Origin: Trichosphaerium sp. ATCC 40318
Lineage: Eukaryota; Protista; Tubulinea
DNA length: 64,000 nt
Direction: 5' to 3'
Assembly (NCBI GenBank): GCA_038496445.1
Contig: JALMLS010000540.1
Location: forward strand, 131,946-195,945
This document shows positions 56,137-60,971 of this stretch, piece after piece. How positions within the stretch are numbered: position 1 is the stretch's first letter; every line of letters begins with the position of its first letter. A program made the translations under genes and the position numbers. Below the pieces are notes generated by a model that did no database searches, was not told the DNA's origin, and saw nothing but the letters and a program-made list of their open reading frames with translations.

Positions 56137-59100
56137 TTAAGAGCCGCATGAAATACAACCTTCTTCCATTCTACAAATTTGTCCGACAACTTCAGGTTCT
56201 TCAGCAGCAGCAGCGGCAGCACGTGCTTTAAGCTTTTGTTTATCTACAGTAAACTGAATAGCATGAGCAGCAGGCTGTGTACGCAAGTAGTACATTCCTA
56301 AACAACAAAGTCAAAAAAACGGCGGAAAAAAACAAGAAAAAAGAAAATAAAAAACAAGAAGGTCTCAATATCGTACCTGTCTTCAATCCCTTTTTCCATC
56401 CATAAAAGTGCATAGACGTGAGTTTCTGTACATCAGGCTTTGCAATGAAACAATTGAAACTCTGAGACTGATCAATAAAAGCACCTCTATCAGCAGCAAG
56501 GTCAATCATTATTCTTTGTTTTACTTCCCAAATAGTCTTATAAAGGTCACGTAATTCTTGTGGAATTTCTGGGATATTTTGAACAGATCCCTTATCAGCA
56601 ACAAGCTAAGAGCAAAAAGCATAAGTATACAACCACAACAATATAAGAAAATGACAAAAAACAAAAGTCGTACTTGATTACGAATATCATCAGTCCATAG
56701 ACCAAGTTTCAACAAGTCGTTAACAAGATGTTTGTTGATAACCATGAATTCACCTGCAAGAACACGTCTAACAAAGATGTTCGAGTGGTAAGGCTCAAAG
56801 CATTCATTGTTACCGAGAATCTGAGATGATGAAGCGGTTGGCATAGGAGCTACCAATAGGGAATTACGCAAGCCATGTTTCTTAATCTCAGCTTTAAGTC
56901 CAGCCCAGTCCCATTTATCGAATGAAGGCTTAACGCCCCACAAATCGTACTGTAGGAGTCCTTTATCTGCAGGAGATCCTTTGAACGTTTCATAGGCACC
57001 GTTTTTGATTGCCAAGTCTAGAGAAGAAGGTTAGAAAGAAACAACAAATAAAAAAGTTTCAAATAAGAAAAAAAGAAAAGTTTGGATACAGAAAAAAAGA
57101 GACGGGAAGAAAAGTACCTTTGGAGCTAGTAAGAGCGGCAAAGTATATGGTCTCAAAGATTCTCTTGTTGACCTTTCTTGCCTCATCAGAATCCCAAGGG
57201 TGTCTTAGTTTCAAGAATACATCAGCGAGACCCTAAAATCACGAGTTAAAAACAGGCTTCTAAAAAAAAAAAGGAACATTTTACAGAACAGAGAAGCGCA
57301 AGTACGTACTTGTACACCAATAGCGATAGGTCTGTGTTTCATGTTGGATACACGAGCCTCAGGTACAGGATAGTAGTTACCATCGATGATTTTGTTCAAA
57401 TTCTTTGTGACATGGTATGTGATGTCGTAAAGTGCTTGATAATCATAAGTTCCATCTTCAGCGACATATTTAGGCAAAGCCAAAGAAGCAAGATTACATA
57501 CAGCAACCTAAAGATACAAACATGAGTACAGGACCAAAGGCAATAGTTAATCACAACGTACCTCATCAGGAGAAGTATACTCAACAATCTCTGTACACAA
57601 GTTGGAAGACTTGATAGTACCAAGATTTTGTTGGTTTGACTTTGAGTTACATGCGTCCTTGTACATCATGTAAGGTGTACCAGTCTCAATTTGGGATTCC
57701 ATAATAGCAAACCAAAGCTTTTGAGCCTTAATAACCTTTCTGGCACGTCCTGGATGAAGAGTCAACAACAAAGAACGAAAAAACATCCAACGAAAAGCAA
57801 AAACAAAAAAAAATCTATTCGTACCTTCTTTCTCGTATCGAGTGTAGAGCTTCTCAAACTCCTCACCCCATACTTCATGGAGGCCAGGTGCTTCATTAGG
57901 GCAGAACAATGACCAGTCGCCGTTACTCTCACAACGCTTCATGAACAAATCGGATATCCATAGAGCGTAGAACAAATCACGAGCGCGTTGTTCTTCTTTA
58001 CCGTGGTTCTTTTTCAAGTCCAAGAAATCAAAGACATCTGCGTGCCATGGTTCCAAATATACGGCAAAGGCGCCCTTTCTTTTACCACCACCTAAGCACA
58101 GAGTAAGAGCGAGAACAATAACAAACAAAGAGATACAACTTTAAAAGAAAAAATAACGGATAGGCGTTAACGCTCGTTTGGCATCGTACCTTGATCGACG
58201 TAACGTGCAGTGTCGTTGAATACACGTAACATAGGTACAATTCCGTTAGATGTACCGTTTGTACCCTTGATGTAACTGTTGCTTGCACGAATCTTGTGCA
58301 TGGCAAGGCCGATACCACCAGCACTTTTAGAGATGAGTGCGCATCGTTTTAGAGTTTCGTAAATTCCTTCAATAGAATCGTCTGTCATGTCCAAAAGGAA
58401 GCAAGAAGACATTTGAGGGCATGGTGTGCCTATTTTGTAGAGTGAGTAGCGGACAAATGGTGCGAGAAAAAAAAAGCGGGAAATAAGCTGTTGAAGGTTG
58501 CTTGTGAAGATAATAAGAGATTGAGCGTACCAGAGTTGAATAGAGTTGGTGTAGCGTGCGTGTACAACATACGAGACATTTTGTCGTATGTTTCCAATAC
58601 ATCTTCAATAGATTCTTTATGGATACCAACAGCAACACGCATCTGCAATAGTCATTAGTTACAGCTGAAAAAAAGACAAAACAAAAAATTTCAATTCTAC
58701 AAAAAGTGTTATTTTAACGTACAAGCATGTGTTGTGGGCGTTCTACGATAACACCGCTGAGTCTGATCAAGTATGAGCGCTCCAAGGTCTTAATACCGAA
58801 AAAGTCGTACTACAAAAAAAGCCGTTAGATAATGTAAAAAAAGGGTTCAAAGTGTAACTGTAGATGTTACAAGCTTAAACGTACTTGGTAATCGCGGTTG
58901 TAATCAATAGCAGCTTCAAGTTTGTCTTTGTTATCCATTACTATTTTGTAAACGTCATCAGCGATGAGTGGCGACTTCTCTTGGGTCTTAGGGTTGATGT
59001 AGGTATACATTTTTTCAACTGTGTTGGCGAAATTGCCTTCAGTCTCTTTGTGGAGGTTTGAAATAGCAATTCTAGCAGCGAGAGCACCGTATCCTGGGTT

Positions 59101-59473
59101 TAAAGTTATTACTTCTGCGAATGCCAACGTGTAATTTTTGGCGCGTACCAGGATGAGTTGTAGCCATGTAAGCGGCTGTCTCAGCAGCGAGATTGTCTAA
59201 TTCTCTGGTTGTAACACCGGAGTATACACCAGCAGTTACTTTTTGAGCGACAATGGTAGGATCTACATCATCAGGCTTCAAAACAGGCTCTATGTTGAGG
59301 CAAAGGTTTTCTAAACGCTTTGTAATTTTGTCGAAAGCAACCTAGCGTTAAATAGATTAATACGAGCGTAGAAACTTGCGGAGGAAAGTTTTATATCCAA
59401 AAGTTTGGGAGTAGGAAAAACAACCACGTACTTTCTGTCTTTCGCCATCCCGCTTTACTACGAACATTGACAT
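56137..59473 (-). CDS. RRM1: Ribonucleoside-diphosphate reductase large subunit (class Ia R1), 12 introns
   Basis: ATP cone [13 protein letters not shown]; [81 protein letters not shown]-terminal [12 protein letters not shown]. Confidence 0.98.
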
Positions 59474-59623
59474 GTTCGAGAAGTGTGGTCAAGTAGGATT
59501 GGTTATAACGATAAGTGATATTTTGGCGCCACAAAGAAAAAAGCGTGGAATTGGCATTTGACCGGCAAATTCGTAAATTCAAAATACCGCTAATTACAAC
59601 GGCTAGTAACACAACTCCAAAAA
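59474..59623. promoter_or_regulatory. 150-bp bidirectional RNR promoter with E2F-like, CHR-like and CCAAT elements
   Basis: TTTTGGCGCC 59521-59530; CCGGCAAA (reverse TTTGCCGG) 59562-59569; TTCAAA (reverse CHR TTTGAA) 59578-59583; ATTGG at ~59498 and ~59550. Confidence 0.65.
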
Positions 59624-60971
59624 ATGAACGCTATTAAACTTGCTGAGAAGAACGAACCTCTACTCAAAGAGAACCCAGGACGCTTTGTCTTGTTCCCTAT
59701 CAAAAACGATGCCGTATGGCGGTTGTACAAGAAAGCAGAAGCCTCCTTCTGGACTGCTGAAGAGATTGATCTCCATACCGACATCAAAGACTGGAGCCAA
59801 AAACTCAACGATAACGAGAGACATTTCATCAAATACGTCCTCGCTTTCTTCGCTGCATCCGATGGTATTGTCCTCGAGAACCTCGCTGTCCGTTTCATGA
59901 AGGAAGTACAATCACCAGAAGCTAGATGCTTCTATGGCTTTCAAATTGCCATTGAGAACATCCACAGCGAAACCTACTCCCTCTTAATCGATACCTACAT
60001 TCGTGACGCCAAAGAACGCAACGAGCTCTTTAATGCTATTGATCACATCCCATGCATCAAAAAGAAGGCTGATTGGGCTACCAACTGGATTAATAGCGAA
60101 GAAACCTCTTTTGCCGAACGTTTAGTCGCTTTCGCTGCAGTTGAGGGTATATTCTTCTCTGGCTCCTTCTGTGCCGTATTTTGGCTCAAGAAGCGAAATC
60201 TAATGCCTGGTTTAACATTTTCGAACGAACTCATTTCCCGCGACGAAGGATTACACTGCGATTTCGCCTGCTTGTTATACTCTCAACTCATCAACAAATT
60301 ACCAGCTGAGAAAATTTACGAGGTACTTTTGGCACAAAGTTTTTTTACAGGAATTTTAACACTAACATACGCTCTAAGATCATTGGAAACGCTGTTGAGT
60401 GTGAACAAGAGTTTATTTGCGATTCTTTGCCTGTAAAACTAATCGGTACGTTATTTAATCCGTTTCTACTGTTTCTTTTTCTTGAAACCCTTTATTTTCT
60501 TTAGACTCTAACTTTTTTATTTTCAAACAGGTATGAACTCTGATATGATGAGAACTTACATCGAATTCGTCGCTGATCGTCTCATCGTTGCTCTTGGATA
60601 TCCTAAATTGTACAATGCCAAAAATCCTTTCGACTGGATGGAACTCATCTCACTTCCTGTACGTTATTTCTTGGTTCACAAAGTTGTTTCTTTTTTTCTC
60701 TTTTGTCTTATCGTAACCTTACGGATTGCGTAAGGCGTAATTTTTTCACGTGTTATCTGTTTTCACCGCGTAACTTTTTAGTTACTTTTTGCAACCGACA
60801 CTTTTTTTTTTGTTTACCTCGAGTGGCTGTTTACTAACTTGTACTTCTTAGGGTAAGACAAACTTCTTCGAGAAGCGTGTTTCGGAGTATCAAAAGACCG
60901 GCGTAGCGCTTGGTGATAAGGCCACTGATAGTGGTTCTAACCACATGTTCGTAATGAACGCTGACTTTTAA
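59624..60971 (+). CDS. RRM2: Ribonucleoside-diphosphate reductase small subunit (class Ia R2), 3 introns
   Basis: [35 protein letters not shown] (radical Tyr), [31 protein letters not shown], ends NADF*. Confidence 0.98.

Follow-up and report, generated by a model that had tools for sequence, protein, structure and literature searches.

In well-studied eukaryotes, the genes for the large (R1) and small (R2) subunits of class Ia ribonucleotide reductase (RNR) are unlinked and coordinated in trans. Mouse Rrm2 has a proximal E2F site plus a CCAAT box, and tobacco RNR2 has E2F sites. Bidirectional promoters pair genes of one complex or pathway, as with the histone pairs, HSPD1-HSPE1, and GPAT-AIRC. 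Here we describe a locus of the amoeba Trichosphaerium sp. ATCC 40318 in which R1 and R2 stand head-to-head and share a short spacer with a single E2F consensus site. The locus lies in a 64,000-nucleotide stretch (the window) of contig JALMLS010000540.1, designated C118 in our numbering of the contigs (C118:131946-195945). Judged from its sequence, the spacer is probably a compact bidirectional G1/S promoter that places both RNR genes under E2F-type S-phase control.

The R1 start codon (position 59473, minus strand; CAT at 59471-59473) and the R2 start codon (59624, plus strand) are separated by exactly 150 bp (59474-59623, no strand assigned), a candidate bidirectional promoter whose flanking starts are far closer than the 1 kb allowed for bidirectional promoters. 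The divergent arrangement and its coordinates had been proposed in an initial annotation made from the sequence alone and proved correct, with PF02867 matching the minus-strand exons and PF00268 the plus-strand exons. The accompanying term “mini-operon” is a misnomer, since R1 and R2 are two divergent transcription units. Both genes are intact and intron-rich, with at least nine introns in R1 and three in R2. Homology searches were run with single exons, and the assembly comprises 70.3 Mb in 642 contigs with ~38% GC. The published Trichosphaerium draft has 70.87 Mb in 710 scaffolds, 37.69% GC, and a mean intron of 75 bp (PMC10521059).

R1 extends over 56137-59473 on the minus strand in ~10 coding blocks, which were delimited with PF02867 and tblastn. 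String and phase arithmetic places exon 1 at 59432-59473, intron 1 at 59342-59431, exon 2 at 59149-59341, and intron 2 at 59094-59148. Approximate coordinates of the further coding blocks are 58717-59093, 58505-58642, 58188-58445, 57310-58092 (containing one in-frame intron), 57122-57232, 56671-57027, 56375-56605, and 56137-56298. The PF02867 model of the large-chain barrel is covered exon by exon over positions 1-522, and two intronless R1 reference proteins that served as tblastn guides align over their full length, residues 1-791. The features of a eukaryotic class Ia large subunit are all present, namely an N-terminus that lines up with the beginning of the reference proteins and runs into VAFDKIT, the start of the ATP-cone; a barrel with the catalytic loop, ~81% identical to human R1 over 156 aligned core residues; and a C-terminal CXXC shuttle in the CISCGS redox tail (...EGCISCGS, followed by the stop codon). 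Apart from the copy on contig C19 described below, the genome contains no second R1 locus.

R2 (59624-60971, plus strand) consists of four exons, 59624-60322, 60379-60445, 60531-60658, and 60852-60971, which add up to 337 codons and a stop. It matches PF00268 with an E value of 2.6e-94, and its best match in the PDB is mouse R2 (E value of 6e-108). Aligned to mouse R2, it keeps all iron ligands and the radical tyrosine, including the SRDEGLH motif, and it ends in the R1-binding tail ...FVMNADF. The di-iron ligands, the radical tyrosine, and the tail together identify it as a class Ia small subunit.

The same head-to-head layout is found a second time, at C19:485445-493999, in a sequence 98.8% identical to window positions 55422-64000, and for this reason a local misjoin at the R1–R2 junction is very unlikely. 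A chimeric join might be suspected in a draft long-read assembly, and the block shared with C19 stops between window positions 55.0 and 55.4 kb, beyond which this flank differs between the contigs. An assembly artifact is nevertheless highly improbable, as the identical arrangement occurs on two contigs that differ at ~1.2% of positions and the junction lies deep within a shared block of at least 8.6 kb. Differences between C118 and C19 concentrate in R1 introns, with 43 differing columns in 685 nt compared with 11 in 2652 nt of coding blocks, and they cluster around 56.6-57.3 kb. None at all is seen in 58955-59862, a stretch that takes in the spacer, the two first exons, and introns 1 and 2 of R1. 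The C19 copy is either the other allele or a recent duplicate. A dispersed repeat of ~600 bp (53704-54335), probably a transposable element with >30 copies on many contigs at 73-75% identity, is found a short way to the left of the shared block.

The spacer contains one match to the E2F consensus TTTSSCGC, the near-palindromic TTTTGGCGCC with its GGCGCC core (59521-59530, plus strand), placed as in the proximal promoters of E2F-regulated G1/S genes. Its distance to the ATG is 49-57 bp for R1 and 94-102 bp for R2, and it has a CCAAT box on either side, at 59498-59502 and 59550-59554 (both on the minus strand, ATTGG on the plus strand). From the rates in the window, 150 bp should contain 0.023 E2F 8-mers, 0.33 CCAAT boxes, and 0.28 TTTGAA/TTCAAA hexamers; one, two, and one are seen, respectively, the hexamer not being above chance. 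The E2F site is the sole spacer motif that is clearly unusual against the window rates.

The near-palindromic site and the two CCAAT boxes were part of the initial annotation, as was another E2F consensus, TTTGGCGCG, in R1 intron 2 (59137-59145, plus strand), and each was located where it had been predicted; a second E2F-like site said to be in the spacer has no counterpart among TTTSSCGC matches. The site in intron 2 overlaps the 5' splice site of this intron (GTACGCGCCAAA on the minus strand). Another E2F consensus, TTTCCCGC at 58476-58483 on the minus strand, falls within an R1 intron farther along the gene (GTACGC...AAATAG). Two other matches at the locus, at 57135 and 60234, were discarded as coding coincidences (YFAAL and ISRDE), and the remaining E2F 8-mers of the window (7019, 14930, 21637, 43480, and 52432) are in ORF-like or unclear contexts.

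The spacer also carries a CHR-like (cell-cycle genes homology region) hexamer, separated by 3 nt from a GCGG; the combination, at 59578-59590, reads GCGGTATTTTGAA on the minus strand (TTCAAAATACCGC on the plus strand). The initial annotation had read it as resembling a pair of a cell-cycle-dependent element (CDE) and a CHR. Promoters with such pairs belong to animal G2/M genes regulated by DREAM/MuvB, and the likeness to them consists of TTTGAA with GCGG nearby and of LIN54-like and LIN9 genes encoded in the genome. GCGG and TTTGAA are indeed present, but the CDE/CHR reading is unsupported and was rejected, because the two are separated by 3 nt (GCGG-TAT-TTTGAA) rather than the canonical 4 and because the hexamer occurs at chance frequency. 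The composite GCGG-N3-TTTGAA is found once in 64 kb, although it was defined only after being seen. CHR elements typically mark G2/M rather than G1/S genes.

To place the spacer site in the context of the genome, replication and deoxynucleoside triphosphate (dNTP) genes were located via Pfam families with domains starting at the N-terminus, and the upstream DNA was then read. PCNA has a consensus E2F site 62 bp before its ATG, as TTTGCCGCCAAT, which adjoins a CCAAT box in a fused arrangement. In RPA70_a, the best RPA70 gene, the site is 52 bp ahead of the start codon, and in MCM_a it is 31 bp ahead of a putative one; these three sites together span 24-62 bp upstream of the ATG. With R1 included, 4 of the 8 core replication/dNTP promoters have a site within 120 bp upstream (4 of 13 counting paralogues), compared with 0 of 20 Ras-family controls anchored likewise (Fisher p 0.003 to 0.018); a single control gains a site when the limit is widened to 400 bp. 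TTTSSCGC has 5239 occurrences genome-wide, a rate of one in 13.4 kb, and at this base rate four matches in thirteen 120-bp windows have a probability of the order of 1e-5. The 10-mer TTTTGGCGCC occurs 174 times, versus 63 times for its reversed control, a 2.8-fold excess. The recurrence at replication genes thus exceeds that at controls, in a small sample. We consider it well supported that a core subset of the replication genes of this organism has a proximal E2F-type element, and the RNR spacer site fits this pattern both in sequence and in position relative to R1.

Several other genes of the set lack such a site. No consensus E2F site is present within 400 bp upstream of a second PCNA-like gene, of two RPA70-like genes, or of an R2 paralogue on contig C59; the MCM_b site is intronic, the distal sites of MCM_c and thymidylate synthase (TS) are of unclear context, and GINS (PF05916) has no match in the genome. 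E2F consensus sites were also seen in the 5' part of an MCM2-like gene (L035, C6 at ~243041), in the intron after the acidic N-terminal exon, and in that of the thymidylate synthase gene (L051, C11:437666), at +201 from the domain start. As R1 introns carry such sites too, it may be common for genes of this amoeba to have E2F sites within them. About 18 Ras-family genes (L132-L149; e.g., C41:25179-25661, C96:61813-62295, and C201:78247-78729) encode the whole GTPase domain in one intronless frame, which is unusual given a genome average of ~8 introns per gene.

The genome encodes the factors that would be needed to read such elements. E2F_TDP domains (PF02319) were identified with Pfam at four loci, on C11, C28, C85, and C13; the C85 gene is an atypical E2F with two DNA-binding domains, and the C13 gene has a DP dimerization domain (PF08781). 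With an RB_A pocket protein (PF01858) on C178, all three components of E2F regulation, E2F, DP, and a pocket protein, are encoded. The initial annotation had suggested a search for E2F, DP, and LIN54, and a LIN54-like protein with two CXC/TCR repeats is also present (C84), together with LIN9/DIRP (C140) and NF-YA (C4:849963-850064); the CXC/TCR repeats and LIN9 correspond to the DNA-binding part of the MuvB core. In the supplementary table of the published draft (PMC10521059), scaffold 00028 is listed with an E2F gene and scaffold 00013 with an E2F/DP gene, numbers that agree with those of C28 and C13. Two E2F consensus sites, TTTCCCGCG and TTTTGGCGC, at C85:66196-66226 (L022), precede the exon of the first DNA-binding domain of the atypical E2F by 83-106 bp, which hints that this gene might be autoregulated.

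The spacer site, the encoded E2F, DP, and RB proteins, and the recurrence of the motif at replication promoters but at none of the 20 controls make E2F control of the pair plausible. Of the S-phase control put forward in the initial annotation, this E2F part is plausible and the CDE/CHR part unsupported. In the mechanism we propose, an E2F-DP dimer would bind the near-palindromic TTTTGGCGCC at mid-spacer and would be restrained by the RB-family protein, with NF-Y probably occupying the CCAAT boxes to either side. When replication begins, the RB-family repression would be lifted and R1 and R2 would fire divergently together; R1 may receive an additional boost from the two E2F consensus sites in its introns. 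From the sequence, we infer binding of the motif, its action on both genes, and an S-phase-specific expression. E2F/RB control of RNR has a precedent in Amoebozoa, because the RB orthologue of Dictyostelium, RblA, represses the two RNR subunits (PMC3386910).

A number of observations weigh against a promoter of this kind. The 8-mer TTTSSCGC is not enriched genome-wide (5239 occurrences versus 5612 for the reversed control). TK, TS, a FEN1-like gene, and ASF1 have no E2F site within 400 bp upstream, and the sample of S-phase genes is small. The start codon of MCM_a is possibly preceded by an intron. E2F matches in CDC45 (two) and just 3' of PCNA were dropped as they are coding (VGAKIL and YLAPKI), and such coincidences mean that the sample needs to be treated with care. 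The spacer site is also 94 bp from the R2 ATG, farther than at the other positive promoters.

This last distance bears on the main alternative explanation, in which the 150 bp would be two abutting independent promoters. The E2F site would then mainly serve R1, together with the intronic sites, while R2 would be driven by elements of its own, the CCAAT box at -74 and TTCAAA at -46, and the adjacency would have arisen neutrally as a compact genome was rearranged. The site is 94-102 bp from the R2 ATG, compared with 24-62 bp at PCNA, RPA70_a, and MCM_a; the extra E2F sites are confined to R1 introns, with none in the introns of R2; and the C59 R2 paralogue has ATTGG and TTCAAA in its promoter and no E2F site. 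Yet the GGCGCC core is palindromic, and animal E2F sites act in both orientations over ~100 bp. Moreover, 150 bp leaves little space for two insulated promoters, and two specific partners out of ~27,000 genes would become neighbors with a probability on the order of 1e-4. Independent promoters are a possibility to be kept in mind but rather unlikely, and we favor a single promoter serving both genes.

The R2 paralogue itself qualifies how tightly the two subunits could be coupled. This third R2 gene, at C59:165223-166398 on the minus strand (loci L003-L006), is intact and unlinked and has more introns than the R2 of the window, to which it is 77-86% identical in conserved exons; its iron-ligand and radical-tyrosine motifs are intact. 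No E2F consensus is found within ~1.3 kb upstream, and ATTGG and TTCAAA are near its ATG. The paralogue could be a constitutive or damage-type R2, like p53R2. The idea of a strict stoichiometric coupling of R1 and R2, as envisaged in the initial annotation, is weakened by the presence of an intact, unlinked R2 gene without an E2F site. The supplementary table of the published draft (PMC10521059) lists the paralogue as an RNR beta gene on scaffold 00059, with a best hit to Chitinophagales.

Linkage of R1 and R2 sets the amoeba locus apart from the other eukaryotes sampled. No R1 was found within 5-8 kb of R2 in Dictyostelium purpureum, Polysphondylium violaceum, Chaetoceros tenuissimus, or Aureococcus, and no R2 within 4-7 kb of R1 on an intron-rich eukaryote contig. 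The two genes are thus linked in none of the five eukaryotic contexts sampled, in line with the initial annotation, which had called for such a synteny comparison across protists. We also found no description of a eukaryotic head-to-head R1–R2 pair in the literature searched. In bacteria and giant viruses, RNR subunit genes are often adjacent, and the possibility has to be considered that such a source contributed the linked pair, or just R2, to the amoeba and that introns and host control elements were gained subsequently.

The R2 sequence is of limited help in this respect. Its best hits, 75-80% identical, are a mix of Bacteroidota, dictyostelids, diatoms, and giant-virus-like contigs. In a tree of R2 exon 1 (121 rows), the window R2 is beside intronless R2 genes of giant-virus-like metagenomic contigs and not beside the dictyostelids, without strong support. 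R2 cannot be placed because it is too conserved, and since no well-supported clade holds the window sequence, the tree was rejected as evidence for either origin. The R1 sequence is more informative. Its core identity to human R1 is ~81%, whereas none of 598 IMG/VR relatives exceeds 68%, and its closest exon-sized relatives, up to 88% identical, are on intron-bearing eukaryotic contigs; both comparisons argue for R1 being a native gene.

Gene order points in the same direction. To our knowledge, the only head-to-head RNR precedent is the L312/R313 pair of Mimivirus, which we take to be adjacent and divergent from the L/R naming convention. R2 was located within 6 kb of R1 on 19 of 80 viral contigs that have R1, in tandem on 18 of them and tail-to-tail on one, with none head-to-head; on both bacterial contigs that were inspected, the genes form R2->R1 operons. 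For Mimivirus, the small RNR gene has been reported as L312 and the large one as R313 (PMC1215527). Many Mimiviridae-derived genes, 40% of them with introns, have been reported in Trichosphaerium (PMC10521059). The reported viral genes, the Mimivirus arrangement, and the position of R2 in the tree are what would speak for an acquisition; in view of the R1 sequence, the orientation of the viral and bacterial pairs, and the lack of a well-supported R2 clade, we hold it to be improbable. More improbable still is a scenario in which the single shared E2F element and the intronic sites obligately co-fire both RNR genes and in which a linked pair of giant-virus type was domesticated by the amoeba or was passed from amoebae to giant viruses. 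If this were true, the head-to-head RNR module of Mimivirus and the amoeba R1–R2 pair would share one history.

Three further searches concerned the locus. The pattern of the R2 exon 1-exon 2 junction had no match in metagenome contigs, no near-identical protein from this organism was present in the protein collection searched, and an Rfam search of the window gave no match. Directly after R2, at 60990-61625 on the plus strand, is an open reading frame (ORF) of 211 amino acids with a Cys-rich N-terminus followed by a Trp/Gly-rich part and no Pfam match.

The R1–R2 pair is a further, putative case of two familiar phenomena, the control of RNR genes by E2F and the sharing of a bidirectional promoter by partner genes. 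It leaves the established knowledge of RNR and E2F unchanged, and its value is that of a clean example. RNR requires both subunits, and one 150-bp spacer with one E2F site would make a very compact test bed, which could show whether a single E2F element acts in both directions. The pair would also permit the study of E2F/RB in Amoebozoa beyond Dictyostelium, and a small set of candidate E2F targets is gained for a little-studied amoeba.

Compared with the E2F/NF-Y-type RNR promoters of animals and plants and the RblA-repressed RNR genes of Dictyostelium, the amoeba locus is alike in having TTTSSCGC near a gene start with CCAAT nearby, and in the presence of E2F, DP, RB, and NF-YA genes in the same genome. 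It differs in that the subunit genes of those organisms are unlinked and have their own promoters, while here one site, recognized from sequence, lies between both genes. With the bidirectional promoters of the H2A-H2B and H3-H4 histone genes, HSPD1-HSPE1, and GPAT-AIRC, it shares the head-to-head orientation of partner genes across a very short spacer; an RNR pair so arranged was not found reported in a eukaryote, and the shared use of the spacer is putative here. The bacterial nrdB-nrdA operons and Mimivirus L312/R313 likewise have the two RNR subunit genes physically linked, but the bacterial and most viral pairs are codirectional (R2->R1) and intronless, whereas the amoeba pair is divergent and intron-rich and has an R1 of the eukaryotic type.

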